Shown here: piece by piece, positions 3,737 through 57,549 of the stretch
Numbering within the stretch: position 1 is the first letter of the stretch
Layout of the letters: each line of letters starts with the position of its first letter
Virus record (IMG/VR): IMGVR_UViG_3300023202_000247
Coordinates: 62,001-126,000 of that record
DNA: 64,000 nt
Reading direction: 5' to 3' (one strand)
Made by a program: the position numbers and the translations under genes
Notes under the pieces: model-generated
Databases searched by the model: none
Seen by the model: the letters and a program-made list of their open reading frames with translations, nothing else
What the model was told of the DNA's origin: nothing

Positions 3737-3760
3737 GCCCCAACGCTCGTAGCCAAACGC

Positions 3761-3800
3761 GCCCCGCATTGCATCACGCAATGCGGGGCGCTGGCTATTT
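3761..3800 (+). terminator. GC-rich hairpin, probable terminator
   Basis: gccccgcattgc-atcac-gcaatgcggggc. Confidence 0.55.
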
Positions 3801-12767: not shown

Positions 12768-13208
12768 ATGGAAAAGCTACGAGTAGAGATTGACTGTCAT
12801 GGTAACAAGATGTATTACAAGTGGGATACGGATGAACTGCATAATCCATATGGTCCAGCTGTTGAAGGTGCAGATGGAGATAAAGAATGGTATCTAAACG
12901 ATAAGCTTCACCGAGAAGATGGCCCTGCTATTGAAGGTGCAGATGGAGATAAAGAATGGTATCTAAACGATAAGCTTCACAGAGAAGATGGTCCAGCAGT
13001 TGAATATGCATATGGACATAAAGAGTGGTATGTAAACGGTAAACGTCATCGTGAGGGTGGTCCTGCTGTTGAACATGCAGATGGATATAAAGAATGGTAT
13101 GTAAATGGTACCAAACTGACAGAAGAAGAGTTCAACAGTCGTCACTCATTTTGTACCAGCAAGATTGTAGAGATTGACGGAAAACGTTACAAGCTAGAAG
13201 AAGTTTGA
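12768..13208 (+). CDS. HREDGPA-repeat protein, copy 3
   Basis: same architecture. Confidence 0.85.
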   Translation: MEKLRVEIDCHGNKMYYKWDTDELHNPYGPAVEGADGDKEWYLNDKLHREDGPAIEGADGDKEWYLNDKLHREDGPAVEYAYGHKEWYVNGKRHREGGPAVEHADGYKEWYVNGTKLTEEEFNSRHSFCTSKIVEIDGKRYKLEEV

Positions 13209-13211
13209 AAG

Positions 13212-13652
13212 ATGGAAAAGCTAAGATTAGAGATTGACTGTGATGGTACAAAAAAGTATTACAAGTGGGATACGGATGAGTATCATAATCCATATGGTCC
13301 AGCTATTGAATATGCAAATGGATATAAAGAGTGGCGGGTAAACGGTAAACGTCATCGTGAAGATGGCCCTGCTATTGAAGGTGTAAATGGAACTAAATTT
13401 TGGTATCTAAACGGTAAACGTCATCGTGAAGATGGTCCAGCAATTGAATTTGTAAATGGATCTAGAGAATGGTGGGTAAACGGTAAACGTCATCGTGAAG
13501 ATGGTCCAGCTTTTGAACATGCAGATGGATATAAAGAATGGTGGATAAATGATACCAAACTTACAGAGGCAGAGTTCAACAATCGTCACTCATCTTGTAC
13601 CGGAAAGATTGTTAAGATTGACGGAAAACGTTACAAGCTAGAAGAAGTTTGA
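13212..13652 (+). CDS. HREDGPA-repeat protein, copy 4
   Basis: same architecture. Confidence 0.85.
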   Translation: MEKLRLEIDCDGTKKYYKWDTDEYHNPYGPAIEYANGYKEWRVNGKRHREDGPAIEGVNGTKFWYLNGKRHREDGPAIEFVNGSREWWVNGKRHREDGPAFEHADGYKEWWINDTKLTEAEFNNRHSSCTGKIVKIDGKRYKLEEV

Positions 13653-13655
13653 AAG

Positions 13656-14096
13656 ATGGAAAAGCTAAGATTAGAGATTGACCATCATGGTACAAAAAAA
13701 TATTACAAGTGGGATACGAATGAACTGCATAATCCATATGGTCCAGCTGTTGAATATGCAAATGGATATAAAGCTTGGTGGATAAACGGTAAACGTCATC
13801 GTGAAGATGGCCCTGCTATTGAAAGTGTAAATGGAACTAAATTTTGGTATCTAAACAATAAGCGTCATCGTGAAGATGGTCCAGCTATTGAACATGCAGA
13901 TGGACATAAATCTTGGTATCTAAACGATAAACTTCATCGTGAAGATGGTCCAGCTTTTGAACATGCAGATGGATATAAAGAATGGTATGTAAATGGTACC
14001 AAACTGACAGAAGAAGAGTTCAACAGTCGTCACTCATCTTGTACCAGCAAGATTGTGGAGATTGACGGAAAACGTTACAAGCTAGAAGAAGTTTGA
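13656..14096 (+). CDS. HREDGPA-repeat protein, copy 5
   Basis: same architecture. Confidence 0.85.
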   Translation: MEKLRLEIDHHGTKKYYKWDTNELHNPYGPAVEYANGYKAWWINGKRHREDGPAIESVNGTKFWYLNNKRHREDGPAIEHADGHKSWYLNDKLHREDGPAFEHADGYKEWYVNGTKLTEEEFNSRHSSCTSKIVEIDGKRYKLEEV

Positions 14097-14099
14097 AAG

Positions 14100-14498
14100 A
14101 TGGAAAAGCTAAGATTAGAGATTGACTGTGATGGTACAAAAAAGTATTACAAGTGGGATACGTATGAACTGCATAATCCATATGGTCCAGCTATTGAATA
14201 TGCAGATGGAGATAAATTTTGGTATGAATTTGCAGATGGAGATAAAGCTTGGTATCTAAACGGCAAACGTCATCGTGAGGATGGCCCAGCTTTTAAATAT
14301 GCAAATGGACATAAAGAATGGTATGTAAATGGTAAACTTCATCGTGAAGATGGTCCAGCTATTGAATATGCAGATGGAGATAAAGCTTGGTGGATAAATG
14401 ATACCAAACTTACAGAGGAAGAATTCAATAGTCGTCACTCTTGTGCTGGTAAAGTTGTGGAGATTGATGGAAAACGTTACAAACTAGAAGAAGTTTGA
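14100..14498 (+). CDS. HREDGPA-repeat protein, copy 6 (internal in-frame deletion)
   Basis: KFWY-EFADG junction lacks part of one repeat. Confidence 0.85.
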   Translation: MEKLRLEIDCDGTKKYYKWDTYELHNPYGPAIEYADGDKFWYEFADGDKAWYLNGKRHREDGPAFKYANGHKEWYVNGKLHREDGPAIEYADGDKAWWINDTKLTEEEFNSRHSCAGKVVEIDGKRYKLEEV

Positions 14499-14501
14499 AA
14501 T

Positions 14502-14979
14502 ATGGAAAAGCTAAGATTAGAGATTGACTGTGATGGTACAAAAAAGTATTACAAGTGGGATACGTGTGAATTGCATAATACATATGGTCCAGCTGTTGAA
14601 TATGCAGATGGAGATAAATCTTGGTATGTAAACAATAAGCTTCACAGAGAAGATGGTCCAGCTGTTGAAGATGCAGATGGATATAAATTTTGGTATCTAA
14701 ACAGCAAGCTTCATCGTGAGGATGGTCCAGCTGTTGAAGGTGCAAATGGAGATAAAGTTTGGTATGTAAACGGCAAGCTTCATCGGGAAGATGGCCCTGC
14801 TATTGAAGATGCAGATGGAGATAAATTTTGGTCCTGCTGTTGAATTGGAAGATGGAACTAAAGAATGGTATGTAAATGGTACCAAACTGACAGAAGAAGG
14901 GTTTAACAATCGTTACTCATCTTGTACCAGCAAGATTGTAGAGATTGATGGAAAACGTTACAAGCTAGAAGAAGTTTGA
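14502..14979 (+). pseudogene. HREDGPA-repeat protein, copy 7, frameshifted
   Basis: deletion at ~14830 joins ttttgg to tcctgct, splitting it into ORFs 14502..14843 and 14791..14979. Confidence 0.8.
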
Positions 14980-15008
14980 AAGATGGAAAAGCTTCAAGAG
15001 GATATACG

Positions 15009-16283
15009 ATGAGCACAGTTGTAGTAATGAAATGTGTTTCCGCAGAAGATCATCCCAAGGCTGATGCCCTGCGCCTTTATCAATTTTCTCCCGGCGATGG
15101 TCAAGAGAATGTACAAATCATTGCCAACCTGGAAAATGTATATCAGGTAGGTGATCATGCAATCATTGCCAATATTGGTTGTATTCTCAAGGAAGATAAT
15201 CTAAATGTCAAGCCTGCTAAGTTTCGTGGTATTCCTTCATATGGAATAGCAATGGGTAAGACTGATAAGCCTGTAGGTACTGATCTAACCGATGAGTATT
15301 GCATCGAGCAAAAATCGCCGTTGCCCATTCAGAAGTGGCCGAAGATTGAGAGTCTTTCCAGCGTCCGTCAATATATGGTAGAGGTTGATGAGTTTCATCC
15401 AATCGATTACCGACCAAAGATAAAGATTGATGGGGCAAACACTTCGGTACATGTCAAGGATGACACTGTCATGGCTCAAAGCCGTGTCAAGATGCTCACT
15501 GTAGATGATGACCTGTACGGTTTTGCCAAGTGGGTTGATGCGAATCGAGACTACTGGTCTGCAATTTCTGACGATTACTTAGTTGTTTTCGGAGAATGGG
15601 CAGGTGAAGGAATTCAAAAGCGCAACGCTGCTGTAGCTAGCGTTAGTAAAAAGTTTTTTGCGGTTTTTGCAATTTACGATGGTAAGGGATATATTGTAAG
15701 CCCCGAGAAAATTCGTGCCCTTTTGCCAAAGCATGAAGACATTTACGTTTTGCCATGGGCCGATGAGAAACATACATTTGATTTCACGGACCGTGACAAG
15801 TTGCGTGTAACGGCTGAGCATGTAGCAAAGCAAGTTGCAATCGTGGAAGAGTGCGACCCTTGGGTCAAGAGCACATTTGGTTTGGAAGGTACGGGCGAAG
15901 GTCTAGTTTACTACCCTTTGCTCGAAGGCGATGATTATATTGATCAGTTTGCATTCTCCAATTTCGTTTTCAAAGCCAAAGGCGAAAAGCACAAGGTAAA
16001 GAAAACGAAGAAGCCCGTGCCCATTGATCCGGAAGTTGCTGAATCCATTGCGGAATTCGTTGATACATTTGTCACGGAGAATCGTTTGGAGCAAATGGCA
16101 ACGGAGTTGGGCTGTGGTTATGATATGAAAAAGACTGGTCAGTTTATCAAGCTTGTCATAGCTGACGTTCAAAAGGAAAGCGTTGATGAATTGAAAGCTT
16201 CCAAGTTGGAATGGAAAGATGTGGTGAAACCGGTGAGTAGCGCAGCCGTATCTTGGTGGCAAAAGAAATGTAAAGAAATATAA
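15009..16283 (+). CDS. ATP-dependent RNA ligase (Rnl2-like) with N-terminal tRNA-binding OB domain
   Basis: HPKADALR..FRGIPSYG OB domain; KIDGAN, FGEWAG, FAVFAI, GEGLV, FKAK motifs; RBS gagga before ATG 15009. Confidence 0.85.
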   Translation: MSTVVVMKCVSAEDHPKADALRLYQFSPGDGQENVQIIANLENVYQVGDHAIIANIGCILKEDNLNVKPAKFRGIPSYGIAMGKTDKPVGTDLTDEYCIEQKSPLPIQKWPKIESLSSVRQYMVEVDEFHPIDYRPKIKIDGANTSVHVKDDTVMAQSRVKMLTVDDDLYGFAKWVDANRDYWSAISDDYLVVFGEWAGEGIQKRNAAVASVSKKFFAVFAIYDGKGYIVSPEKIRALLPKHEDIYVLPWADEKHTFDFTDRDKLRVTAEHVAKQVAIVEECDPWVKSTFGLEGTGEGLVYYPLLEGDDYIDQFAFSNFVFKAKGEKHKVKKTKKPVPIDPEVAESIAEFVDTFVTENRLEQMATELGCGYDMKKTGQFIKLVIADVQKESVDELKASKLEWKDVVKPVSSAAVSWWQKKCKEI

Positions 16284-19631: not shown

Positions 19632-19779
19632 TTGACAAAAAAGTCCTTGATGTCATACTGAAGGCAGGGAAGCACGTTGATCAACGTTTCCTTGAAAGGC
19701 TCGGTGATAAATCACCGAGCCTTTCTTTTATCATGATCACAAGAAACATCCTTGACAAACCTCCAATGATGGTTAGATT
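19632..19779 (+). promoter_or_regulatory. tandem promoters with an intervening hairpin and terminator
   Basis: TTGACA 19632 N16 CATACT; terminator gaaaggctcggtga-taaa-tcaccgagcctttctttt; TTGACA 19752 N16 TAGATT. Confidence 0.65.
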
Positions 19780-25245: not shown

Positions 25246-25318
25246 GGGCCATTAGCTCAGCGGTTAGAGCATTCGCCTCATAAGCGACTGGTCGTAGGTT
25301 CGAATCCTACATGGCCCA
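25246..25318 (+). tRNA. tRNA-CAT, probably tRNA-Ile2 (lysidine); no encoded CCA
   Basis: cloverleaf GGGCCAT/ATGGCCC, anticodon loop CTCATAA, GGTTCGAATCC; C4:G69 and C5:G68 (TilS determinants); upstream TTGACG/TATAAT. Confidence 0.9.
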
Positions 25319-25356
25319 CAAAGATTCCAAAAATAGGAAAGTAAGGAAAGGTAAAA

Positions 25357-35274: not shown

Positions 35275-35615
35275 GCTTTGAAAAGTTTTTCACAGCATTC
35301 AAGGACTATCTGAATAGCAAAGGTACATGTGATAGTGGAGACTTTCCCATCAAACAATACAAAGAAGAGATGCGTATTGCTCTTAATGATATAATTGATG
35401 AGCGTATCAAGCTAGATAAACACAAACCACCTCGCAAAAGCAGCATGACTACCGTCATGCCTTCTCAGCGACCGATGGAAAGTGATAGCGTCGACATGCT
35501 CGACGCGCTAAACTGTGCCCCTATACCACCGGCCAACCCGTCTAACTATTCTCAGTGGATGGAAGCGTACACGAAATGGTACTATTCCAAAAGGAACAAA
35601 GTAATTAAACGATGA
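35271..35615 (+). CDS. hypothetical protein, paralogue of previous gene
   Basis: MSFE..LNCAPIPP..WMEAYTKWY. Confidence 0.7.
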   Translation: MSFEKFFTAFKDYLNSKGTCDSGDFPIKQYKEEMRIALNDIIDERIKLDKHKPPRKSSMTTVMPSQRPMESDSVDMLDALNCAPIPPANPSNYSQWMEAYTKWYYSKRNKVIKR

Positions 35616-37126
35616 AACAAATATCTCTCAGTAAGAAAGAGGAGATGCTTTGCAATTTGTTGATGGATGTTGTATTGGAGAAGGCTCCGGGTACAACGTT
35701 ACGTATTGCTGGTGGTTGGACCAGGGATAAATTGCTTGGTTCTACCACCAATGATATTGATATCTCCATTGATACCATGACGGGTGAGAAGTTTGCTCAT
35801 ATGGTTACTGAGTACATGGATGATAAAGATATCAAACATGGCAACATATCCGTCATCAAATCAAATCCAGACCAAAGCAAGCATCTAGAAACCGCAATGC
35901 TTAAAATCTATGGAATGGATATAGATTTTGTTAACCTTCGTAAAGAAACATATGCTGACTCTAGAATACCATCTATTGAGATAGGTACACCAGAAGAAGA
36001 TGCCAAACGTCGTGATTTAACTATCAATGCATTGTTTTATAATATAAACGATGACAAAGTTGAGGATTTTGTTGGCGGTCTAAAAGACTTGGACGATTAT
36101 AATCTCAGAACACCTATCGATGCTAAGCAAACTTTCTTAGATGACCCTCTGAGAATGCTTCGTATCATTCGTTTTGCTGCTAGATATAAATATGATGCAG
36201 ATGATTCCATCATCGAGGCAGCGAATAAGGATGATGTTAAGTGGGCTTTCTTGAATAAAGTAAGCAAAGAAAGGATGTGGACTGAAATTGCCGGGCAAGA
36301 GAAGCCTGATGGGTGGAAAAACGGTATCTTGAATGAAAAATATGCCATCCACGGTATCGAATTGCTCAACAAAATGGGTTTGCGAGACCTATTGTTCTGG
36401 TTTTCTCCGGAAGAAAAGAAATTATTGGGTCTAGATAAGGATTTGGTTAGTTTTGATTCGGATCAAAATAATCCTAATCATGATTTAACCATTTGGGATC
36501 ATACATGTAAAGTTATTGATAACCTAGAGTATTTTCGTCACTTATCTTCAAGAGAAGATGAGTTGGTTTTGACGTTATCAGCACTATTACATGACATAGG
36601 TAAGTGTGATTTGTGTTCCAGACAAGAAACTGATGAAGGTTATTACACTTATCATGGTCATGAAGACTCTTCTGCTAAGATGACAGAGTACTTTCTCAAC
36701 AAAATGAAAGCTCCTGTGCACATTACAAAGCGTGTTGTGCGTTTGGTTGCAGAGCACATGCGTCTTCACAACCTTCCCGATGATGCTTCTGATAAAGCAT
36801 TGCGTCGTTTCATGCGAGACCTCGAATCGGACTGGGAAATGTCCGTTGATTTGGCCTTGGCCGATGCAATGGGAAAGAATAACCCTCCGTTTGGAACGCC
36901 GGATCGCTACCTCAACTTTAAAAACAGAATGAAAAATCTCAAGGCTGAGATGGGAAACAAGACTGCGCCGAGTCGTCCAATTTCTGGCCATGATTTGATG
37001 AGTCTTGGCATTCCAGCTGGTCCACAAATGGGTAAGTTACTCAAACAACTCGATGAAGAGTTGCTAGAAAACCCAACTATGTCAAAAGATGAAGCTATCA
37101 ACTTTGTCAAAAGTTTGAATGTGTGA
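35612..37126 (+). CDS. cca: CCA-adding tRNA nucleotidyltransferase with HD domain
   Basis: AGGWTRDKLLG..DID, DFVNLRKE, RRDLTINAL, DDPLRMLR; LLHDIGK. Confidence 0.92.
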   Translation: MKQISLSKKEEMLCNLLMDVVLEKAPGTTLRIAGGWTRDKLLGSTTNDIDISIDTMTGEKFAHMVTEYMDDKDIKHGNISVIKSNPDQSKHLETAMLKIYGMDIDFVNLRKETYADSRIPSIEIGTPEEDAKRRDLTINALFYNINDDKVEDFVGGLKDLDDYNLRTPIDAKQTFLDDPLRMLRIIRFAARYKYDADDSIIEAANKDDVKWAFLNKVSKERMWTEIAGQEKPDGWKNGILNEKYAIHGIELLNKMGLRDLLFWFSPEEKKLLGLDKDLVSFDSDQNNPNHDLTIWDHTCKVIDNLEYFRHLSSREDELVLTLSALLHDIGKCDLCSRQETDEGYYTYHGHEDSSAKMTEYFLNKMKAPVHITKRVVRLVAEHMRLHNLPDDASDKALRRFMRDLESDWEMSVDLALADAMGKNNPPFGTPDRYLNFKNRMKNLKAEMGNKTAPSRPISGHDLMSLGIPAGPQMGKLLKQLDEELLENPTMSKDEAINFVKSLNV

Positions 37127-38591: not shown

Positions 38592-39011
38592 GTGAGTCTT
38601 CTAGATATATTAAAGAAAGAAAAGCTTTCTGCGATGAAAGCAAAGGACACTGTCCGGCGTGACATTCTAAGTCTCGTTATCGGTCAAGCTCAACAACAAA
38701 ATGTTTCGGATGATGCGGCGCTTCATGGTATCATCAAGAAACTAATCAAGAGCAATGATGAAACTTATGAAAGTGCGCGCGATGACATGCGAGATCAGCT
38801 GAAGGAAGAAAACAATATTCTTCAATTCTTTTTGCCAAAAGAAATGTCTCGTGATGAGATAATAAAGTTTATCGATGACAATGTTGACATTGCATCAGCT
38901 CAATCTGATGGCCAAGCAATTGGTCAGGTTATGAAAGCAATCAAGAATCAGAGCACCCCAGTAAACGGAAATCTAGTTAAAGAAATCGTAAACGAGAAAC
39001 GTAACAAATGA
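38592..39011 (+). CDS. GatB/YqeY domain protein
   Basis: AMKAKD, ILQFFLPKEMS..I, GQVMK. Confidence 0.85.
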   Translation: MSLLDILKKEKLSAMKAKDTVRRDILSLVIGQAQQQNVSDDAALHGIIKKLIKSNDETYESARDDMRDQLKEENNILQFFLPKEMSRDEIIKFIDDNVDIASAQSDGQAIGQVMKAIKNQSTPVNGNLVKEIVNEKRNK

Positions 39012-42000
39012 CAGAATCAATCTTTGACCAAGTACTGGCAAACCAAAAATCAATAAGCAGAATTGATAACGATCCTCAAATTTTTTATGCTCTCATCGGG
39101 CTCATGCGCAAGCAAGATCCAAAGCAGTATGAGGAAAAGTTTGGTGAACTTAGAAACACCTTAGAAGAATATCTCGTCACAATCGAGAGGGATTACGAAA
39201 TCCTGGCAAACGCTGAGCGCAGTTTGTTCGAGGAAATTCGTAAAACCACAAAACGTCGCAATCCTTTTGACGGGTTGCAAGAGCAACAAGACGATCTATA
39301 TGATCGCTTCTTCGACACGCTCGCGCCCAACTTCATTCGTGTACAAAAGCAAGTTCTGCTTCAAATACGAGATTACTTTCGTACCTTGGTAAAAGTTGTG
39401 GCTGATTTGCAGCCACGAACTTTGATGATTGCTGAAGATGCTAAGGTAGATTTTTCATCCACCGATTCCATCAACAAAATGATGGGTGAGATGAATCTAA
39501 ATAAAGGTCATGTTCGGGACTGGGTGAACTCCGTCATCCATCTAGACAAAGCTGAAGAAGCTCTTGCTCAAACAGCTGACAATGTTGTTGGTTATGTTGA
39601 AACATATTATACGTTTCTGATGAATCGACACAATTCAGAAGGTGTCGCCATTCATCGCGATCCCATCGTTACAGATTTGGCACTTCTAATCTATCAAAAC
39701 ATCGATGCCCATGGTGAGATTGATGGTGGTAAGGATCCTGAAGAGTTGAGCGCATATTCCATGCGTAAAGCTGAGATAATTGTTGATGCAATTTCTCAAG
39801 GATTTGTTTGGGACTTTATAAAAAATCCAGATAGCTTTACCGCTTTCATTCGTGAAGCATTTGAAGGTGCAAGCAAAAAAGTTAAAGCCTTGATGTCTCT
39901 TTATCGTACAGAGATAGATAACCTTAATGCCATCGTTAACTGGAAAGGTCTCAGCTTTGGTGGTTCGGATGCAGCAGAGCGACGACTAAATCGTCATCTA
40001 GATTTTCTAGGAGATGTCGATCCCAACTCGATTCGTGAACAAGAAGATACAAAGCTTCTTTCAAAAGAAGAGCGCTACAACCGCGAGTTCAAAAACAAAA
40101 CGATTGCTCACATTGTTGAGCTTCTTACACACGAGAAGCCACAGATGCGAGAGATCATCGATTATGTTCTCGCACGAAAGAAAGAACTGCGTGTATTCTT
40201 CCACGAAGAAAACAGCTTTTACGTTTGCAGAATTGGACAGGGCAATCCATTTCTCGGGACAGCCCCGGGTGCATTAGAGGTAATCCCAGGCACTCGTCCT
40301 ACCGCAAGCATGGACGACATTATCGGAAGTGGCTTTGCAGAGATTAAAGAGTTTGTTGGCCACATTGAAGATGCTGGTAAATGGCATGATTTGTTTCTTG
40401 CAACAAGTCCAAGTAAAACAACTGATAAAAGTAATGTATTACTTGTTGGACCGATGGGATGTTTAGCTGGAGAAACATATATTCAATTTGAAGTCTACGA
40501 TGAAGAAGGGAAAAGAGTCAATCACAAAGGTGGAACAATAGAGCGTTTGTATCAACGCTTCCATGATTTGCTACAAACTCACGGTAGTCATCCTCAAAAT
40601 AACAACGGCACTTTTTGTGTATCATCTGTTAATGATGAGGATCGTATCTTAATTAACAAGATAGAGGACGTTGTTAAAACTGGTGAGAATGAATGCTATG
40701 AACTTACAACTGCCAGTGGTGACTCTATTATTGCAACAGCTGATCATCCATTTTTCAATGGTGAAAAATATATCGAACTTCAAAATTTGAAAGAGGGTGA
40801 TTTTGTCACACTGCATAGAAATAAAAAGTACACGGGTGATGCTCCTATTGATAAAAATAAGAGATCCAATGATAGAAAATATTTGTATGTCAAGAATCAC
40901 CCAATAGCTGAAAAAAAGATTGTTAATGGCAAATATGAATATTACAGACTTGTGCGCGCAAGAGCTGTAATGGAAGCTCATATTAATAACTTGTCTCTTG
41001 ATCAATATGTTTCTATGTTGAACGATGGGGAAGTTAATGGTCTTTCTTTCTTAGAAAGAAACCAACATGTTCATCATATTGATGAGAACATACTAAATGA
41101 TGAGCTTAACAATCTTGTTATCATAGATAGAGCGGAGCATAATAGTAAACATGCACGCGAACATCAAAACAATCTCAGGTTTGAGATTGTTAGAGATAAA
41201 ATTGTATCAATAAAATCTGTTGGAAAAAGAACAACTTATGACATAAAAATGTCTAAGCCTTATCATAATTATGTTGCAAATAATTTTGTTGTGCATAATT
41301 GTGGAAAGAGCGAAATGCTCAGAGCTGTTGGTTGTGATAAAAATAGTCTCGGCATTTACGCACAAGGTTCGGATTTTCTTACTTGCTGGAAAGGCGAGGC
41401 AGAAAAGAATCCCAAGCGCTTGTTCGAATCCGCTGTCAAGCTGCAACGTGAGAGCAAAAAACATGTTCACATTCTAATTGATGAGATTGACTCTGTGCTC
41501 TTGAAACCAGAGTTCATGAGCTATGGAGACTCTAATTTGTCTTTGGAATTTCAAATGATAATGGATGGTGTGGTTCATTATCCTCACCTTAGTGTGTGGG
41601 GCACGACCAACCATCCCGAGCGAATTCCGATGCCGATGATTCGAAGATTCTCAAAGGTACTCATCGTTGGCGAATTGAGCGTTGATGATCGAGAGACGCT
41701 GCTCAAAACCTTTATTGGTAGTAACCTACCCATTGCTACCGTGAAGGCAGGAGAGTGGAAGATGCTTAGCTCCAAGCTCGAAGGTGCAACTGGTGATATC
41801 GTTCGTAAGGTTGCCGATCATCTATGGCGTACAAAGATGAGTTGGTTCGTTGCGAATCACGAAAAAGATGCAGAAAAGCTCGTCGAGTTCCTTAATCGTG
41901 ATGGTCAATTTGAAATTGACACGTTTACCAAAGAAGAGCGCGGAGAATTCAAGACGAAACTTTCAGATTTCTTCGAGGTAACGGCAGATGATATCAATGC

Positions 42001-42118
42001 AGCCATCGATGTTCACTTGAGAAACCCGGCAATCAATGCGGAAATTGAAGTTGCACAAGAAACTTACGCGCAAGCTCGTGAGTTCCTTAACCAATTGGAC
42101 GCTGGCAAAATGGAATAA
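39008..42118 (+). CDS. AAA+ ATPase interrupted by an intein
   Basis: Walker A GPMG/CGKS split by intein; ILIDEIDS; TTNHPERI..RRF. Confidence 0.88.
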   Translation: MTESIFDQVLANQKSISRIDNDPQIFYALIGLMRKQDPKQYEEKFGELRNTLEEYLVTIERDYEILANAERSLFEEIRKTTKRRNPFDGLQEQQDDLYDRFFDTLAPNFIRVQKQVLLQIRDYFRTLVKVVADLQPRTLMIAEDAKVDFSSTDSINKMMGEMNLNKGHVRDWVNSVIHLDKAEEALAQTADNVVGYVETYYTFLMNRHNSEGVAIHRDPIVTDLALLIYQNIDAHGEIDGGKDPEELSAYSMRKAEIIVDAISQGFVWDFIKNPDSFTAFIREAFEGASKKVKALMSLYRTEIDNLNAIVNWKGLSFGGSDAAERRLNRHLDFLGDVDPNSIREQEDTKLLSKEERYNREFKNKTIAHIVELLTHEKPQMREIIDYVLARKKELRVFFHEENSFYVCRIGQGNPFLGTAPGALEVIPGTRPTASMDDIIGSGFAEIKEFVGHIEDAGKWHDLFLATSPSKTTDKSNVLLVGPMGCLAGETYIQFEVYDEEGKRVNHKGGTIERLYQRFHDLLQTHGSHPQNNNGTFCVSSVNDEDRILINKIEDVVKTGENECYELTTASGDSIIATADHPFFNGEKYIELQNLKEGDFVTLHRNKKYTGDAPIDKNKRSNDRKYLYVKNHPIAEKKIVNGKYEYYRLVRARAVMEAHINNLSLDQYVSMLNDGEVNGLSFLERNQHVHHIDENILNDELNNLVIIDRAEHNSKHAREHQNNLRFEIVRDKIVSIKSVGKRTTYDIKMSKPYHNYVANNFVVHNCGKSEMLRAVGCDKNSLGIYAQGSDFLTCWKGEAEKNPKRLFESAVKLQRESKKHVHILIDEIDSVLLKPEFMSYGDSNLSLEFQMIMDGVVHYPHLSVWGTTNHPERIPMPMIRRFSKVLIVGELSVDDRETLLKTFIGSNLPIATVKAGEWKMLSSKLEGATGDIVRKVADHLWRTKMSWFVANHEKDAEKLVEFLNRDGQFEIDTFTKEERGEFKTKLSDFFEVTADDINAAIDVHLRNPAINAEIEVAQETYAQAREFLNQLDAGKME
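40460..41299 (+). mobile_element. intein (280 aa) with HNH homing endonuclease
   Basis: C1 CLAGET, ATADHPF, HVHHIDEN..NNL..EH..KH, NFVVHN/C. Confidence 0.92.
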
Positions 42119-42298
42119 GGTAGAAGCGTCATGTTTGGCATTGCTCGGGACGTTCTTTGGTGCTATTGGTCTATGGATCATTGGCGTCCCGAGCAAATCT
42201 TTTTCCGAATTCTTCCCAATCTTAGCAGCGTTAGCTGTGTATAATATGTCCATAGCATATAATATTGGTGATATTGAACTATAATAATAGGAGAAAGT

Positions 42299-42556
42299 TT
42301 GTTTGACGACATAGGTGATTTACTAAAGCAATTACCATCTGCAAGAGATGATCTTACCAAGATGATTCTGTCTTATCTAAAAGACAAAGGCTTATCTCCT
42401 GAAGAATTAGTAATTGCACTTCTTAGTATATCTGCGCTTATTGCGTCGAGCACTGGTTGTGAGGAAAAAACATATAAGAAGCTTGCGGAGATAGCATTTG
42501 CAATTGAAGAGGCGAATGTCACTCTAATCAAACAAAAACAAAGTAAGGCTAACTAA
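42299..42556 (+). CDS. hypothetical protein
   Basis: RBS aggag, TTG start. Confidence 0.6.
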   Translation: MFDDIGDLLKQLPSARDDLTKMILSYLKDKGLSPEELVIALLSISALIASSTGCEEKTYKKLAEIAFAIEEANVTLIKQKQSKAN

Positions 42557-42566
42557 AGGAGAAGCC

Positions 42567-42734
42567 ATGGCAAAGAAAAAGAAGAGAAACTATCTCTTGG
42601 CTTTGGTTGCGAAAAATGATCCTGCGAGGTACAGGACACGCACCGTAAAGCCAGAGAAGGGTAAGGGACGTAAAAATCGCCCGCGAAGGAAAGACTGGAG
42701 CAAGAAGATTGATGACCTTGATTATGCAGCTTAA
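42567..42734 (+). CDS. arfA: ArfA-like alternative ribosome rescue factor (55 aa)
   Basis: RBS aaggag; RNYLLALVAKNDPARYRTRTVKPEKGKG resembles ArfA [25 protein letters not shown]; not in ORF track. Confidence 0.65.
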   Translation: MAKKKKRNYLLALVAKNDPARYRTRTVKPEKGKGRKNRPRRKDWSKKIDDLDYAA

Positions 42735-42768
42735 TATAGTTTAAGCTATATAATCAAGGTCATCAATC
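42707..42768 (+). promoter_or_regulatory. long hairpin over the arfA-like stop codon (candidate RNase III site)
   Basis: perfect 19-bp arms 42707-42725 / 42750-42768 plus inner agcttaa/ttaagct. Confidence 0.7.
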
Positions 42769-42784
42769 ATTAGGAAAGAGTAAA

Positions 42785-43180
42785 ATGAGAAACAGTTTGA
42801 CAATCAACGCAGAGACAAAAGTAATCCTCGAAAAACTCAAAGAGAATCGTCAAAAGCATATTGAGATTTATAATGAGGCCATGAAGAATTACAAGAGTAA
42901 AGTTATAGAACTCTTGAAAGAAAAGATTGAAGAGGTCAATTCTTCTGAAAAGATTGAAGCCATATCTTTTCATCTAGCCCTTCCGCAGTCGTTTGTAAAA
43001 GAATATGATATGGCAATTAGAGCGCTAGAGTATAATGTTGATGATACGATTCAATTGGATCAAGATCAGATTGAAAAGTATATCAACGACAACTGGCAGT
43101 GGATGGATACATTCCTCGTTGGTTCTATGAACTATTCTGCTCAAGCCGCAGAGTATGGGGCGTCGAGAGGATTACGATGA
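42785..43180 (+). CDS. hypothetical protein
   Basis: ORF track. Confidence 0.7.
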   Translation: MRNSLTINAETKVILEKLKENRQKHIEIYNEAMKNYKSKVIELLKEKIEEVNSSEKIEAISFHLALPQSFVKEYDMAIRALEYNVDDTIQLDQDQIEKYINDNWQWMDTFLVGSMNYSAQAAEYGASRGLR

Positions 43181-44270: not shown

Positions 44271-44738
44271 ATGGATACGGTATTGAATAACCGTTTGGAT
44301 GATTCTCAATTCCTATTTGGCCTTGCAGGTATGATTATGAGAAACATGCAGAAGAAAAAGCGATTCAACGATCATACTCTAGAGGCGACCTCTAAAGTAT
44401 TGAGAGGTTGTCAAAAAATTCTTCTGGAGATGCCTGACGTTACTGTTGCAAAGGACCCTACAGATGGAAACGGCATACCTTTGGAATCCTTCTCTGGAGG
44501 GCAAGTCTTGGTAGATGCTTTGGAGAAATTGACTCATCTGTATCTGAACCAATCAAATAGTAGTCCTCATGTAACGGCAAGGTTGGCCGGGATGATGGTT
44601 GCTTCTTTGGACAGTGGTGAACGGATCACAGATTTTCGCTATGAAGCTCTCGAGCAGATTCTGCAAGCCTGTCAGAGACACTTGCAGAGACACTTGTTCC
44701 ATGAAATGGAAACTAATAAATCATCTCTCAATTCCTGA
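44271..44738 (+). CDS. hypothetical protein
   Basis: ORF track. Confidence 0.6.
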   Translation: MDTVLNNRLDDSQFLFGLAGMIMRNMQKKKRFNDHTLEATSKVLRGCQKILLEMPDVTVAKDPTDGNGIPLESFSGGQVLVDALEKLTHLYLNQSNSSPHVTARLAGMMVASLDSGERITDFRYEALEQILQACQRHLQRHLFHEMETNKSSLNS

Positions 44739-44955
44739 AACAATTGCAGCTGTTTATGATCTTCACGATGATGATATAGATCGCGATCGTGTGGATAAAC
44801 ACATCTCAGAATGCAATGTATGCAAAACGATGATTGATAACGAACGTGAATCCAATCCATTGGTTGGTCTACCAGAGCATGAGCTTGAAGAATTGTGGGA
44901 AAACACCGAGCCACAAGCTGGTGACGGAAAACGTTACAAGCTAGAAGAAGTTTGA
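44599..44955 (+). CDS. small protein with anti-sigma zf-HC2-like motif, fused to an HREDGPA C-cap
   Basis: HISECNVC motif; ends DGKRYKLEEV; start probably ATG 44701. Confidence 0.5.
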   Translation: MLLWTVVNGSQIFAMKLSSRFCKPVRDTCRDTCSMKWKLINHLSIPETIAAVYDLHDDDIDRDRVDKHISECNVCKTMIDNERESNPLVGLPEHELEELWENTEPQAGDGKRYKLEEV

Positions 44956-45046: not shown

Positions 45047-45487
45047 ATGGAAAAGCTAAGATTAGAGATTGACCATCATGGTAACAAGAGATACTACAAG
45101 TGGGATACGGATGAGTATCATAATCCATATGGTCCGGCAATTGAATATGCAAATGGACGTAAAGAGTGGTGGGTAAACGATAAGCGTCATCGTGAAGATG
45201 GCCCTGCTATTGAAAGTGCAAATGGATCTAAATCTTGGTATGTAAACAATAAGCTTCATCGAGAAGATGGTCCAGCTATTGAATATGCAAGTGGAGATAA
45301 AGTTTGGTATCTAAACAACAAGCTTCACCGAGAAGATGGTCCTGCTGTTGAATGGGAAGATGGAGATAAATCTTGGTGGATAAACGGTGTCGAATTTACA
45401 GAGGAAGAGTTCAACAATCATCGCTTATCTTGTACCGGAAAGATTGTAGAGATTGATGGAAAACGTTACAAGCTAGAAGAGGTTTGA
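45047..45487 (+). CDS. HREDGPA-repeat protein, copy 9
   Basis: same architecture as 11.8-16.8 kb copies. Confidence 0.85.
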   Translation: MEKLRLEIDHHGNKRYYKWDTDEYHNPYGPAIEYANGRKEWWVNDKRHREDGPAIESANGSKSWYVNNKLHREDGPAIEYASGDKVWYLNNKLHREDGPAVEWEDGDKSWWINGVEFTEEEFNNHRLSCTGKIVEIDGKRYKLEEV

Positions 45488-45490
45488 AAT

Positions 45491-45931
45491 ATGGAAAAGC
45501 TACGAGTAGAAATTGACTGTGATGGTACAAAAAAGTATTACAAGTGGGATACGGATGAATTCCATAATCCGTATGGTCCAGCTGTTGAATATGCAGATGG
45601 AGATAAATTTTGGTATGTAAACGGTAAACGTCATCGTGAAGATGGTCCAGCAGTTGAATTTGCAAATGGAGATAAATTTTGGTATCTAAACGGTAAACTT
45701 CACAGAGATGATGGCCCAGCTTTTGAATATACAAATGGAGATAAATTTTGGTATCTAAATGATAAGCGTCATCGGGAAGATGGTCCAGCAATTGAATGGA
45801 CAAATGGACATAAAGAGTGGTGGATAAATGGTACCAAACTTACAGAAAAAGAGTTCAACAGTCGTCATTCATCTTGTACCGGAAAGATTGTTAAGATTGA
45901 CGGAAAACACTACAAACTAGAAGAGGTTTAA
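45491..45931 (+). CDS. HREDGPA-repeat protein, copy 10
   Basis: same architecture. Confidence 0.85.
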   Translation: MEKLRVEIDCDGTKKYYKWDTDEFHNPYGPAVEYADGDKFWYVNGKRHREDGPAVEFANGDKFWYLNGKLHRDDGPAFEYTNGDKFWYLNDKRHREDGPAIEWTNGHKEWWINGTKLTEKEFNSRHSSCTGKIVKIDGKHYKLEEV

Positions 45932-50322: not shown

Positions 50323-50564
50323 TGTCTGGTGACAAAATTGCGCTGATTAATTCGTGGCTCAAGTGGCGTCCACGAGGGTTGGTAATCATGCCGGCAAGAT
50401 CATATAATGGTGGATACTCTCATCCAAATGTCATTCGTTATGAGGGTGATAACCATTATGAAGCTGGTAAATCATTTACATATGATCTAAACAAAGAGCC
50501 AAATAAAAGCCTAATTGTTGCTTTGAAAAAAGCTTTTAACAGGTCAAGTGGTTCAGATGTCTAA
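50322..50564 (+). CDS. hypothetical protein
   Basis: TAATG-coupled start MSGDKIAL. Confidence 0.5.
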   Translation: MSGDKIALINSWLKWRPRGLVIMPARSYNGGYSHPNVIRYEGDNHYEAGKSFTYDLNKEPNKSLIVALKKAFNRSSGSDV

Positions 50565-52416
50565 GATTAAAGAACTAGAAAAGAAAATCAATAAAGCGCG
50601 TCATGATTACTACAATCATCAACCAACAGTTGATGATGACGTTTTTGATGCTTGGGTTGATGAGCTAACCGAACTCGATCCAGATAACGAATCGGTAACA
50701 GCGATTGGTGCCGATATCGTTAGCAACTGGCCAGAGATGGTACATGATGTACCAATGGGTTCATTGAATAAAGTAAATGGACCAGATGCATTTGGCAAAT
50801 GGGCTGAAGATTGTGAGACCGTATCTGATATCTTTGGCACTGAAAAACTGGATGGCATCAGCATCAACACCATTTGGAAAGATGGTATTCTCGTTCATGC
50901 AGTTACCAGAGGTAATGGTAAAAAGGGTGAAGATATTCTACAAAACGTTCGCCGAATGGAAGGTGTTCCGAAAAAGCTGAAGAACTTTTCTGGTAATATT
51001 CGTGGAGAAATCATTCTTCGCAAAAGCAAATTTGAAAACGTTGCTGATCAATACTCCAACGTTCGTAACGCTGCTAGTGGCATTGCTCGTCGTTACGATG
51101 GCAAAGGGTCTGCCATTCTCACAGTGTTGTTCTATGAGATTGCTGATGAATCATTTGACACCGAACAAAAACAATTTGATCGTTTGAAAAGCCTCGGCTT
51201 GATGACACCGAACCATTGGCACTTCAACGATGTCGCTGCCGCCATTCAAAAGTGGCAAGACTATATGTCTTCGGAACGGGACAAACTTGATTATGATATT
51301 GACGGCTTGGTGTTACGAGTCAATGATATGAATGCTCAGTTTGCCTTGGGAGAGAAAAGTCATCGCCCCAAGGGAGCAATTGCATTTAAGTTTGATGCTC
51401 CAAAAGCTACATCGATTCTGAGAAAGATTACATGTCAAGTTGGCAACACTGGTGCTATTACTCCAGTTGCTGAGTTTGATGAGGTTACACTTGCTGGTGC
51501 TAAAATAACTCGTGCCAGTCTCTATAACTTCAAATATGTTGATGAGTTGAAAGTGGGGCCTGGTGCAGAAGTTCTCATCGTCCGAGCAAATGATGTGATT
51601 CCTCGTGTAGAGAAATGCATCAAACCTGGTCGAAAGTTTACTCCTCCCGATAAATGTCCAGAGTGTAGTTCACTCACCAAGTGGAATGGTGAGTACCTGA
51701 TGTGTACGAATGTTCTTAGTTGTCCTGCGCAAACCATTGGACGATTGAAGATTTGGATTCGTGAACAAAACATTTTGGAGTGGGGAGACAAAGTTCTCAA
51801 ACGTCTAATCGATGCTGAACTCGTTAGAGATGTTGGCGATCTTTACACCTTAACAGCGGATGACATTCAATCGTTAGAACGCATGGGTGAAAAGAGCGCA
51901 AAGAATCTCGTTGCCATCATGGACAAACATCGCAATCTTCCGCTCGAAAACTTCGTTGGCGGCCTTGGTATCAACGGTATTGGAACGTCCATGGTAAAGC
52001 TTGCAATTCGTGCAGGTTATGATACTTTGGATGCATTAAAACAAGCTAGCGTATCTGATTTTTCATCAATCGATGGATTCGGAGATATCAAGGCTGAGCA
52101 ATTTGTTGAAGGTTTGAGTAAAAACTCGAAACGTATGGACGCAATTCTTGCGGCCGGAGTGAAAATTGTTGCACGTCAGAAAGGTGTGCTAACGGGAAAG
52201 AGCTTTTGTTTTACTGGCAAAAGCGCCAAGCCTCGTGCTGAATTGCATAAGATTGTTGAAGGCGCTGGTGGCGATGTGAAAAAGAGCGTCGGCAGAGGGC
52301 TAAACTTTCTCGTATTGGCGGACCCATCTTCTGGTAGCAGTAAAGCTAAAGCCGCAAAGAAACTTGGAACCAAACTCATTTCCGAAGATGAGTTTTTGAA
52401 AATGGTAGGTATGTAA
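50557..52416 (+). CDS. ligA: NAD-dependent DNA ligase
   Basis: YYN, MGSLNK, EKLDG, TRGNG, RGE, DIDGLV, AIAFKF, OB, Zn finger, HhH, BRCT. Confidence 0.96.
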   Translation: MSKIKELEKKINKARHDYYNHQPTVDDDVFDAWVDELTELDPDNESVTAIGADIVSNWPEMVHDVPMGSLNKVNGPDAFGKWAEDCETVSDIFGTEKLDGISINTIWKDGILVHAVTRGNGKKGEDILQNVRRMEGVPKKLKNFSGNIRGEIILRKSKFENVADQYSNVRNAASGIARRYDGKGSAILTVLFYEIADESFDTEQKQFDRLKSLGLMTPNHWHFNDVAAAIQKWQDYMSSERDKLDYDIDGLVLRVNDMNAQFALGEKSHRPKGAIAFKFDAPKATSILRKITCQVGNTGAITPVAEFDEVTLAGAKITRASLYNFKYVDELKVGPGAEVLIVRANDVIPRVEKCIKPGRKFTPPDKCPECSSLTKWNGEYLMCTNVLSCPAQTIGRLKIWIREQNILEWGDKVLKRLIDAELVRDVGDLYTLTADDIQSLERMGEKSAKNLVAIMDKHRNLPLENFVGGLGINGIGTSMVKLAIRAGYDTLDALKQASVSDFSSIDGFGDIKAEQFVEGLSKNSKRMDAILAAGVKIVARQKGVLTGKSFCFTGKSAKPRAELHKIVEGAGGDVKKSVGRGLNFLVLADPSSGSSKAKAAKKLGTKLISEDEFLKMVGM

Positions 52417-55096: not shown

Positions 55097-55127
55097 GAAG
55101 GCCGGTGTCATCATGACACCGGCCTTC
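55097..55127 (+). terminator. strong hairpin after the mini-array
   Basis: gaaggccggtgtca-tca-tgacaccggccttc; no clear U-tract. Confidence 0.55.
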
Positions 55128-55146: not shown

Positions 55147-57549
55147 ATGTCATTTAAATATCAAGTTACTAAAATCAGCGATAATCATTATGTATTGGAA
55201 AAGATGAAAGATATGAAATGCGATGTACATGCATATCTTTCAGAAAAGCTATATAATCTCTCAGAAGAGGGATTGTGGACTCAAGCATATAATTCTGCAT
55301 CACACGAAGGTGTAAAGGGTGTGTACCTAATGCCTGACTGTTTGTCTGATGATACTGAGGTTTTAACGCCGCAAGGATTTACAAAAATATCAGAATTGTC
55401 TTCAGATACAAAAATTGCAAATGTTATAATCACGGATAAGGGTGCTCAAGGGGTTTATTGGAAAGAGCCAAAAGTAATTATACATAGAGAATTAAGAGAA
55501 AATGAAAGGGTTTTCTCACACACTTTTCAAAGATTAAACAAAAGTATTTTAACAACAGAAGGGCATAGGCACCCTTTTACTGTTAATGAATGTACAACTG
55601 ATATTATCAGCAAAGAAATGCCTAAAGAAGCCTTCGTTAAAAATTTTATTTGGTATGGAAATGATTCTGAAACTCGTCAGCGTATAAAACTTACAGATGA
55701 TGAAATAAAACTTATTACATGGATTGTTGGCGATGGAAATATAACACATAATAAAAATAACGCTAATAAAAGAATTAGGTTTGGGTTCAAAAAAATTAGA
55801 AAAATTCAGCGAGTAACTTTTCTTCTTAATGAAATTGGTCTAAATTATACTGTTTGTAAGTCTGACAAACAAACTGAAATTTATATAAACACAAGCTCTA
55901 GTCAAAAATTTATTGATATTGTTGGAGATAATAAAGAATATCCAAAGAATTGGATATCTGATTTGAATCAGAATCAAGCATCTATGATGATAGATGAAAT
56001 GCTAATGATAGATGGAGACTGGGAAAATCATAATAAAATGGGCAGTAGTGTCATATATACATCTAGAAAAACTGATGCTGATTTTATCAGCAGCGTTGTT
56101 TCTAAGTATATTGGGTGTGCAAACATTAAGTTTGATGAAAAAAGATATGATAATGGATGCTGGAAGATATCTATAATTAAAGGTGAAAATCTGCAAAAGT
56201 CATCTAAAAATGGTTTACATAATACTAAAGTTATAACCAATGTATCTAGCTATACAGGAAAGGTTGTTTGCATTACCTGCGACTCTGGGTATTTTATAGC
56301 TCGTCAAAATGGACTTACGTTTGTAACTGGTAATTGCCACCTCGGCTATGGCATTCCAGTTGGTGGTGTTGTTGTTACAGATGACGTTATCATTCAGGCT
56401 GGATCTGGATATGATATCTCGTGCGGTGTAGTGTATATGAAAGTTCCGAAGTTGCATGCTTCGGACATTGCAAGTTGGCAAAAGCGAGAGAGCTGGGTGC
56501 GTGAAGTATCCAAGCGTATTGCTTTGGGCGTTGGCTCTCATCGTCCGAGTAAGATGAAAGAGTTTCAATCTAAAGATACTCATGAAATCTTGCGTCACGG
56601 AGCAAAGGCAATCGGAATCAATTCTGACTTTTGTGAGCGACAGTTCATTCCGATTCGTGGCAACATCGACTTTGAAAAGATTGAAAAGGCTTGGGGCAAA
56701 GCTACTGGTCAGCTTGGATCGGTTGGTGGTGGCAATCATTTCGTAGAAATGCAAGTCGATGAAAATGATGGAAGTGTTTGGGTAATGATCCATTGCGGTT
56801 CTCGTGGTTATGGTTGGCAAACAGCTAATCATTTCTTTTACGAGGGCGCAAAGCATCGTGGCCTTCCCATGAATAGAAGAGAGTCCAGTTGGCTTCGTAT
56901 CGACGAGGATCTTGGCAAAGAATATTGGGCTTACCATAACAGTGCTGCAAACTATGCGGTGGCTAATCGTCACATCATCGTAGAGGGCATTCAGGAAGCT
57001 TTGCGCAAGGTTTGGAAAACTGAAGGCGAGCTTTACTACGAAATCAGTCACAACCTCGTTCAAGAGGAAACGTTGGTATTACCTGATGGTTCGCATACCA
57101 AAGGTTTCGTTCATCGTAAAGGAGCGACGAGAGCTTTTCCAGCTGGGCATCCCGATCTCATCGGAACCAAGTGGGAGAAGACTGGTCATCCATGTCTAAT
57201 TCCGGGCAGTATGTATGACGGAGCTGCAATCCTTTTTCCATTGGAAGGTGCTTATCAAACCGCGTGCTCAGTGAATCATGGTTCAGGTCGCCTCATGGCT
57301 AGAGGTCAGGCAAAGAAAAAGCTAAAGCCCAAGCAGCAGTTTATCGATGACCAGATGCGCACAGTGAAGCGTAAGCTGGGCGGCATCGAAGTCAGAGGTA
57401 TCGTAGGTAATACCAAGAAAACTCCACTTGATGAATGCGGTCACGTTTACAAGAATTTGGATGATGTGCTTGGAGTTCTAGAAGACGAAGGTATTGCAAA
57501 GGTAAAGCATAGACTGTACCCAGTTGCAAACCTAAAGGGTACCGACTGA
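55147..57549 (+). CDS. rtcB: RtcB RNA ligase interrupted by an intein
   Basis: MPD/CHLGYGIPVGG, GYDISCGV, GGGNHF, HCGSRG, SHN, HRKGAT, PGSM, HGSGR, YKNL. Confidence 0.95.
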   Translation: MSFKYQVTKISDNHYVLEKMKDMKCDVHAYLSEKLYNLSEEGLWTQAYNSASHEGVKGVYLMPDCLSDDTEVLTPQGFTKISELSSDTKIANVIITDKGAQGVYWKEPKVIIHRELRENERVFSHTFQRLNKSILTTEGHRHPFTVNECTTDIISKEMPKEAFVKNFIWYGNDSETRQRIKLTDDEIKLITWIVGDGNITHNKNNANKRIRFGFKKIRKIQRVTFLLNEIGLNYTVCKSDKQTEIYINTSSSQKFIDIVGDNKEYPKNWISDLNQNQASMMIDEMLMIDGDWENHNKMGSSVIYTSRKTDADFISSVVSKYIGCANIKFDEKRYDNGCWKISIIKGENLQKSSKNGLHNTKVITNVSSYTGKVVCITCDSGYFIARQNGLTFVTGNCHLGYGIPVGGVVVTDDVIIQAGSGYDISCGVVYMKVPKLHASDIASWQKRESWVREVSKRIALGVGSHRPSKMKEFQSKDTHEILRHGAKAIGINSDFCERQFIPIRGNIDFEKIEKAWGKATGQLGSVGGGNHFVEMQVDENDGSVWVMIHCGSRGYGWQTANHFFYEGAKHRGLPMNRRESSWLRIDEDLGKEYWAYHNSAANYAVANRHIIVEGIQEALRKVWKTEGELYYEISHNLVQEETLVLPDGSHTKGFVHRKGATRAFPAGHPDLIGTKWEKTGHPCLIPGSMYDGAAILFPLEGAYQTACSVNHGSGRLMARGQAKKKLKPKQQFIDDQMRTVKRKLGGIEVRGIVGNTKKTPLDECGHVYKNLDDVLGVLEDEGIAKVKHRLYPVANLKGTD
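55339..56334 (+). mobile_element. intein (332 aa) with LAGLIDADG-type endonuclease
   Basis: C1 CLSDDTEVLT, TTEGHRH, WIVGDG and MIDGD, FVTGN/C; AT-richer than exteins. Confidence 0.92.

Follow-up and report, generated by a model that had tools for sequence, protein, structure and literature searches.

The 321,461-bp virus record IMGVR_UViG_3300023202_000247 (IMG/VR) carries a 55-amino acid (aa) open reading frame (ORF) that is a distant homolog of the ribosome rescue factor ArfA; its last codons and stop lie in a conserved RNA hairpin, its product ends in a conserved Ala-Ala tail, and across homologous loci the tail and the hairpin are strictly coupled. From this combination we infer RNase III cleavage of the message, tmRNA tagging of its product, degradation by way of the Ala-Ala tail, recruitment of a release factor, and a benefit to the phage, and we put at roughly 60% the probability that the gene encodes a phage ArfA-type rescue factor regulated, like E. 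coli arfA, through a hairpin, tmRNA, and in this case an Ala-Ala degron. As with E. coli arfA, its expression is probably linked to how trans-translation is faring in the host, although the parts are arranged differently.

As a back-up for tmRNA, ArfA is regarded as having a narrow distribution among bacteria. In the literature searched, phage ArfA (mentioned in PMC8953757) appears only in passing annotations, with no study of its regulation, and nothing was found on ArfA in jumbo phages or on an ssrA-like tail on ArfA. Phage ArfA genes are already known as annotations; new here are the diverged family, the hairpin with the stop codon at its apex, and the candidate Ala-Ala degron encoded in the gene itself. 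The window (the whole stretch of DNA analyzed, 64,000 nt) comprises bases 62001-126000 of the record, and nearly all genes are on the + strand; coordinates below are those of the window.

The ArfA-Like Gene and Its Immediate Neighbors

The features of the locus are as follows.

42556-42561, + strand: Shine-Dalgarno sequence AAGGAG, 5 nt before the ATG (read from the sequence)
42567-42734, + strand: ArfA-like coding sequence of 55 aa including the TAA stop, MAKKKKRNYLLALVAKNDPARYRTRTVKPEKGKGRKNRPRRKDWSKKIDDLDYAA (ORF list, homologs, Pfam, and hhalign)
42585-42698, + strand: conserved core R7-W44, RN..LA....NDP.R.R.RTV.PEKGKGRK.RPR..xW (family alignment and hhalign)
42657-42668, + strand: KGKG motif (K31, G32, K33, G34), aligned with K34-G37 of E. 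coli ArfA
42707-42768, + strand: 27-bp RNA hairpin, proposed RNase III substrate (fold, z -9.1; compensatory changes)
42711-42731, + strand: C-terminal tail DDLDYAA (acidic/aromatic, then Ala-Ala), ssrA-tag-like
42726-42734, + strand: GCA GCT TAA, the Ala-Ala-stop that occupies the apex of the hairpin, an arrangement common to all eight homologs with an Ala-Ala tail
42772-43180, + strand: ribosome-binding site AGGAAAGAG (42772-42780) and a 131-aa ORF (42785-43180) with no assigned function

A preliminary description of this DNA had reported a 55-aa basic ORF with a KGKG motif and the C-terminus DDLDYAA, all of which are present at 42567-42734 on the + strand; the span that it gave, 42567-42768, runs exactly from the start of the coding sequence to the end of the hairpin. 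The protein is basic and is preceded by a strong ribosome-binding site, and AAGGAG shares one base with the TAA stop (its last base) of the preceding 85-aa ORF (42299-42556). The conserved core, which corresponds to about residues 13-41 of E. coli ArfA in the hhalign alignment, lies entirely 5' of the hairpin. On the 3' side, the ribosome-binding site of the 131-aa ORF begins 4 nt past the end of the hairpin, and the gene in this position is not constant across homologous loci (131 aa, 92 aa, 53 aa, or a 274-aa glycosyltransferase).

The N-terminal lysine run (42573-42584) differs in length among samples; a 54-aa variant with one lysine fewer (P0001) occurs on three contigs. Further upstream, an 82-aa ORF (42036-42284, + strand) overlaps the end of an AAA ATPase gene and is without a family match; it has two hydrophobic stretches and may be a small membrane protein.

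A Hairpin over the Stop Codon

The long hairpin across the last codons and the stop, as originally described, is located at 42707-42768, where it is well supported both by folding and by compensatory changes in homologs. Its 5' arm (42707-42734) consists of codons 48-55 and the TAA stop (42732-42734), its loop of 6 nt (42735-42740), and its 3' arm (42741-42768) is noncoding. The stem has a 20-bp lower part (19 Watson-Crick pairs and one G-U pair), a C/A mismatch, and a 7-bp upper part. The minimum free energy is -40.6 kcal/mol, compared with -14.6 +/- 2.9 in 200 dinucleotide shuffles (z = -9.1), none of which (0/200) folds as well; the hairpin ranks 13th in free energy among 45,913 windows of 70 nt in the 321-kb genome. 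As a yardstick for a candidate RNase III substrate we took at least 20 bp (some two helical turns) of duplex with few interruptions, and the hairpin presents 20 bp, a 1x1 mismatch, and 7 bp. RNase III substrates that are cut on both strands are typically of this kind, near-perfect duplexes longer than two turns.

Other identities for the hairpin were considered. A repeated or mobile palindrome is ruled out, the arm sequence being single-copy in the genome. So is an intrinsic (Rho-independent) terminator, because no T-run follows the stem; a scan of the + strand finds no terminator-like site, the stem is A+T-rich, and the sequence immediately after it is ATCATTAGGAAAGAG. Rfam returns only sub-threshold look-alikes of miRNA precursors, as expected of any long hairpin. 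A genome-wide search for a second combination of hairpin over the stop and Ala-Ala tail on other ORFs gave no clear case, with a pair-count measure that is noisy when used alone.

Other G+C-rich perfect stem-loops of 13-17 bp occur in the window (3759-3791, 19694-19725, and 55097-55127) and at 3-23 kb of the genome. Several of them outdo the hairpin of the ArfA-like gene in strength and lie close together within the first 23 kb of the record. The stem-loops may belong to a repeat family or act as terminators.

The arfA mRNA of E. coli has a comparable structure in the 3' part of its ORF, a hairpin that folds as 14 + 8 bp around a single internal mismatch and so, like that of the window, exceeds 20 bp; in both genes, the residues past the 5' arm are outside the conserved core. 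The two differ in the position of the stop, which is at the apex of the hairpin in the window and about 25 nt past it in E. coli, and in that the window gene is phage-borne. In E. coli, RNase III cleavage or termination within the hairpin yields a non-stop mRNA whose product is tagged by tmRNA, and the occasional full-length ArfA is unstable through its hydrophobic tail (PMC8012679). The tail of the window protein is instead Ala-Ala and ssrA-like, whereas that of E. coli ArfA is hydrophobic and aggregation-prone.

The RNase III hairpins of T7-type phages are a second point of comparison, since they too are long intercistronic stem-loops in a polycistronic phage message and have no T-run. In T7 sites the stem is interrupted by internal loops, and a single cut leaves a 3' hairpin that is protective. 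The window stem differs in being a near-perfect duplex that includes the end of the coding sequence and the stop.

Hairpin and Ala-Ala Tail as One Conserved Module

Ala-Ala terminates 11 of the 69 family members, against 0.3 expected. The tails of the homologs include DSYELAA, DDFFDCAA, SLIAA, LSIAA, and DDLYYRAA, compared with DDLDYAA in the window. The ssrA-like C-terminus proposed in the preliminary description is thereby found to be a conserved property of relatives and, as set out below, one coupled to the hairpin. On sequence grounds the conserved Ala-Ala has the form of an ssrA-like degron (ClpX C-motif 1). ClpX recognizes the terminal residues and free carboxylate of the ssrA tag. That tag (...YALAA) likewise ends in Ala-Ala after acidic and aromatic residues, as do the window tail and DSYELAA of the relative P0003; it differs in being added by tmRNA, whereas the window tail is encoded in the ORF and the tails have Y, C, I, L, R, or H at the antepenultimate position.

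DNA was available for eight distinct loci with the Ala-Ala tail (the window, L002, L003, L008, L010, L011, L025, and L028) and for eight without it (L006, L007, L019, L020, L026, L027, L029, and L030). A long hairpin with GCN-GCN-stop at its apex is present in 8/8 of the former, and all eight of the latter lack the hairpin. The stop is enclosed by 22-37 base pairs in the Ala-Ala loci versus 1-17 in the others, with no overlap between the two groups (Mann-Whitney p 4.7e-4); among the 16 loci compared, the tail is strictly coupled to the hairpin. The Ala-Ala proteins are the nearest relatives of the window protein, and the coupling may therefore have one origin instead of repeated selection.

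The arms differ in sequence from locus to locus. For six aligned homologs RNAalifold predicts 26 pairs, and double compensatory changes are seen in 18 of these. Paired cells make up 90.7% of the observed alignment, versus 70% after shuffling of columns and 31-41% after the partner is displaced by 1-3 columns; none of the shuffles (0/500) attains the observed covariation. The alanine codon pairs across the eight loci are GCA GCT, GCT GCT, GCT GCC, GCC GCA, GCT GCA, and GCG GCC, and this synonymous variation indicates that selection acts on the amino acids in addition to the base pairing. Hairpin and tail have been kept jointly while the sequences diverged to 57-65% identity.

These data bear on a more ordinary explanation, that the hairpin is an intercistronic RNA element (an RNase III processing site or 3'-end stabilizer of the T7 kind, or a translational coupler) beside a constitutive ArfA-like factor. 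There would then be no non-stop message, and the Ala-Ala tail would be a by-product of the needs of the stem. The 3' arm holds the ATG of a possible downstream ORF in L010, L002, and L003, and in the window the next ribosome-binding site is 4 nt past the stem, as a coupler might have it; strong hairpins occur elsewhere in the genome, and ArfA genes of cultured phages have ordinary stops and no such hairpin, so that phage ArfAs can be unregulated. However, the downstream genes vary and yet the hairpin always accompanies the ArfA-like ORF with Ala-Ala-stop at the apex, the synonymous variation of the alanine codons points to amino acid selection, and a long near-perfect duplex is apt to be cut on both sides, so that the stop would be lost. 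We consider an ordinary intercistronic element unlikely.

The tail might also act without any contribution from mRNA cleavage. In that case the full-length protein would be active and, as a ClpXP substrate through its Ala-Ala degron, would accumulate when ssrA-tagged proteins flood ClpXP, making it a sensor of protease load. The conserved C-terminal Ala-Ala after acidic and aromatic residues, as in ssrA tags, is what such a sensor would be expected to have; the constant place of the tail in a long conserved duplex, with the stop at the apex, is left unexplained, and the analogy with arfA and brfA favors truncation (PMC8012679). The probability of a pure protease-load sensor seems to us low.

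Relation to ArfA

The preliminary description had called the gene ArfA-like and proposed an HMM search against the ArfA family as a check. The direct search falls short: ArfA (PF03889) is the sole Pfam family matched by the window protein (E 0.0049), and its score of 16.7 bits does not reach the gathering threshold of 25.5. Profile-profile comparison does give a match, although a distant one. With hhalign, the family alignment and an ArfA alignment of nine enterobacterial and six cultured-phage sequences are matched at a probability of 93.3% (E 2.7e-7; 34 columns, 41% identity), and against E. coli ArfA alone the family gives P 4e-4. The identity claimed for the gene thus stands at the level of distant homology.

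Direct searches give a weak though consistent picture, and some of them do not make the connection. PF03889 is matched weakly by 14 of 45 family members, with no E-value better than 0.002, and is the commonest family among their matches. Scores of profiles against single sequences between the window family and ArfA are only 8-22 bits. There was no match for the window protein in NCBIfam or in PHROGs; a search of the PDB by phmmer and the family profile found no ArfA chain, only chance matches to S15 and hexon proteins (E>1), and the family profile run against six frames of E. coli K-12 did not recover arfA, giving one chance match at E 0.09. Two relatives are named "stalled ribosome alternative rescue factor ArfA" by JGI, and in neighbor clusters of the Atlas, built on language-model features, ArfA accounts for 12-16% of members, one cluster being mostly viral.

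The window protein (55 aa) is shorter than E. coli ArfA (YhdL, PF03889; 72 aa). Both are small and basic, with the pattern N..(A)L...DP.(F/Y)R.R....KGKG followed by basic residues and a tryptophan. In the hhalign alignment, residues of the window protein are paired with those of E. coli ArfA as N8/N14, A12/A18, L13/L19, D18-P19/D22-P23, Y22/F25, R23/R26, and R25/R28, and by this alignment the release factor-contacting N-terminal motif (the A18 equivalent and DP..F/R.R) is present. In E. coli, mutation of A18 blocks RF2 activation, and Q27-E30 form the strand that contacts RF2 (PMC8012679); the alignment thus takes in residues of known function, the counterpart of this strand among them. The KGKG motif is kept (with no variation at G32 across the family and almost none at G34), but after it the family has RK.RPR in place of SY, and the KH motif is absent. 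With this replacement and the sub-threshold score, the window protein is filed, on sequence comparison, as a distant member of the ArfA superfamily and not as a canonical ArfA.

Divergence after KGKG (RK.RPR in place of SY..KH), together with the lack of a match above the family threshold, leaves room for a protein that occupies the mRNA channel of the ribosome without activating a release factor, and that blocks tmRNA-SmpB or the host ArfA on stalled ribosomes or alters host translation in some other way to the advantage of the phage; the A18T form of E. coli ArfA shows that binding without activation is possible (PMC8012679). We give such an inhibitor a small probability. The RF2-contact motif (N8, A12, DP, the aromatic residue, and R.R) is the best-conserved part of the alignment, a short release factor gene lies directly 3' in the contig of one relative and another relative's genome has one, and self-limiting control by tmRNA suits a back-up rescue factor better. 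Complex prediction for the family with E. coli RF2 (RF2_ECOLI) returned a score of 0.00, a value that has no bearing on binding either way.

Among other rescue systems, B. subtilis BrfA and F. tularensis ArfT are also short, release factor-dependent rescue peptides; no sequence relation of either to the window protein was found. The brfA gene is expressed from a truncated, non-stop mRNA and is repressed by trans-translation (PMC8012679), with truncation by a terminator before the stop and not by a long duplex.

ArfA in Cultured Phages and Distribution of the Family

A tblastn search of cultured phages with E. coli ArfA found homologs in Salmonella phage Arash (gp99c), Pseudomonas phage pf16, Pseudoalteromonas phage J2-1, Ralstonia phage RsoM2USA, Citromicrobium phage RXM (g10), and Erythrobacter phage XM05, two of them annotated as ArfA and one mentioned in PMC8953757. 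Arash gp99c (L013) is labeled "ribosomal protein L2", and the ArfA ORFs of pf16 (L014) and RsoM2USA (L016) are unannotated and lie opposite called hypothetical genes. These proteins are, like the window protein, phage-borne and of ArfA type, and those of XM05 and RXM share with the window family a K/QRN..(A) start at the N-terminus and (R)V(R)P.KG(K/R)G. They differ from it in having GS(Y/F).R after KGKG, ordinary stops, no hairpin over the stop, and no Ala-Ala tail. None of the six is detectably similar to the window protein by tblastn.

An exhaustive HMMER search recovered 61 homologous cluster representatives (E<1e-3), and a word-indexed search ten relatives, none of them from NCBI or UniRef. 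The family consensus is RN.ILA....NDP.R.R.RTV.PEKGKGRK.RPR, with G32, P39, and R40 invariant. Scanning with a back-translated pattern identified four other viral contigs (116-336 kb) and eight metagenome contigs, one of which is identical to the window gene. One motif pattern run against 185,579 prokaryotic species genomes (one per species) found no family member. Neither megablast with 3 kb around the gene nor tblastn with the window protein and P0040 gave a match among 50,697 phage records; at that sensitivity, the family is therefore absent from deposited phage genomes. It is known from metagenomes only and occurs there on large viral contigs, several of which share a gene order: glucosaminidase, YqeY, AAA ATPase, acetyltransferase or YpsA-like protein, then the ArfA-like gene.

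A group of large phages carries the ArfA-like ORF as a genuine gene. That it is a chance Lys/Arg-rich ORF beside an unrelated palindrome, as its shortness, biased composition, and weak profile-to-sequence scores against ArfA might suggest, is contradicted by the 61 homologous clusters, the strong ribosome-binding site, the conserved synteny, and the covariation of the hairpin, and has a negligible probability.

Proposed Regulation

When a ribosome stalls at the 3' end of a message and its mRNA channel is left empty, the ArfA-like peptide would, by analogy with E. coli, bind in that channel. It would then bring in a class-I release factor of the host (RF2 in the ArfA paradigm), and the nascent chain would be freed. 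Control would begin at the mRNA. Host RNase III is proposed to cut the near-perfect 27-bp duplex, so that the last few codons and the stop are lost; the DDLDYAA tail would go with them when the 5' arm is cut. Translation of the resulting non-stop message would bring in tmRNA-SmpB, which would tag the peptide for proteolysis. With the cut message handled in this way, truncated active protein (about residues 1-47, with the core R7-W44 intact) would build up only when tmRNA is saturated or disabled.

Messages that escape cleavage would give a product ending in ...DYAA, a putative ssrA-like degron for proteases of the ClpXP type. This degron would close the leak that E. coli closes by the unstable hydrophobic tail of its ArfA. 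This reading accounts for the finding of tail and hairpin only together. Relatives with neither tail nor hairpin, which are short and end just past the core, and the ArfAs of cultured phages may be constitutive versions.

A broader reading, which we offer tentatively and at somewhat less than even odds, is that a clade of huge phages has a self-contained sensor-effector cassette for failure of host trans-translation, in which the uncut product mimics the tmRNA tag. With a non-stop cut route and a tag-mimicking uncut route, both would end in proteolysis unless tmRNA is exhausted. If this is true, ribosomes would keep recycling when the takeover by the phage, or a host defense that shreds mRNA or tRNA, fills the cell with stalled ribosomes.

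Translation-Related Genes of the Phage

The record is estimated to be 75% complete, has a G+C content of 40.6%, and contains one tRNA. Among the genes that can be recognized are those for a helicase, RNA ligase, CCA-adding enzyme, NAD-dependent DNA ligase, and an RtcB that contains an intein; just 5' of the ArfA-like gene are a YqeY-domain protein and an intein-split AAA+ ATPase. RNA ligase, tRNA-Met, the CCA-adding enzyme, the YqeY-domain protein, and the DNA ligase form a set for RNA repair and translation. Those in the window are located as follows.

14976-16283, + strand: RNA ligase
25246-25319, + strand: tRNA-Met (CAT)
35612-37126, + strand: CCA-adding tRNA nucleotidyltransferase
38592-39011, + strand: YqeY-domain protein
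39008-42118, + strand: 1036-aa classic AAA+ ATPase (Cdc48/Vps4-like)
50548-52416, + strand: NAD-dependent DNA ligase
55147-57549, + strand: 800-aa RtcB RNA ligase, interrupted by an intein or a homing endonuclease of LAGLIDADG type

An intein that carries an HNH endonuclease domain splits the Walker A motif of the AAA+ ATPase (GPMG/CGKS) at the position of the slash; in several related contigs, too, an AAA ATPase is found 5' of the ArfA-like gene. Genes for tmRNA, SmpB, RNase III, and a release factor (RF-1/PCRF domain) were not found in the 321-kb record (about 75% complete), and the corresponding steps would therefore need host factors.

Release factor genes do occur with relatives. The phage that carries L002 (IMGVR_UViG_3300009095_001812) encodes a 174-aa "half" release factor (L012:1345-1869) that corresponds to about positions 157-330 of RF1, with a PPT tripeptide and GGQ and without domain 1. 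The P0029 contig has a 194-aa PCRF+RF-1 gene directly 3' of the ArfA-like gene. On the broader reading above, the partner of the ArfA-like peptide in some relatives may be such a half-size RF1 of the phage itself and not the RF2 of the host.

A family of repeat proteins is also present in the window (146 aa; one copy of 132 aa), in at least six copies that are 74-75% identical (12768-14498 and 45047-45931, + strand), four in tandem and two 31 kb away. Their internal repeats, HREDGPA.E..G.KEW..NGK, are MORN-like by eye, and the C-terminus GKRYKLEEV recurs on an otherwise different ORF (44599-44955).

Implications for Phage Infection

RtcB, RNA ligase, and the CCA-adding enzyme are tools for the repair of cleaved tRNA or rRNA. 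Decay of host mRNA during takeover, or defenses that cut RNA, could generate non-stop complexes and exhaust tmRNA, and a back-up factor switched on only at that point would keep ribosomes available for phage translation. Host ArfA has been reported to rise in the DRT2 defense response (PMC13434031).

Huge phages keep a diverged ArfA, and one sub-clade appears to have rebuilt tmRNA-dependent feedback from other parts, with a stop at the apex of the hairpin and an ssrA-like degron replacing the hydrophobic tail. Such a rebuilt loop would be a natural and independent confirmation of the regulatory logic of arfA and brfA. If the 200-nt cassette works as proposed, it would be reusable as a reporter of trans-translation capacity. 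Its presence suggests that ribosome stalling and exhaustion of tmRNA are real constraints in infection, which fits with the RtcB, RNA ligase, and CCA-adding enzyme encoded nearby.
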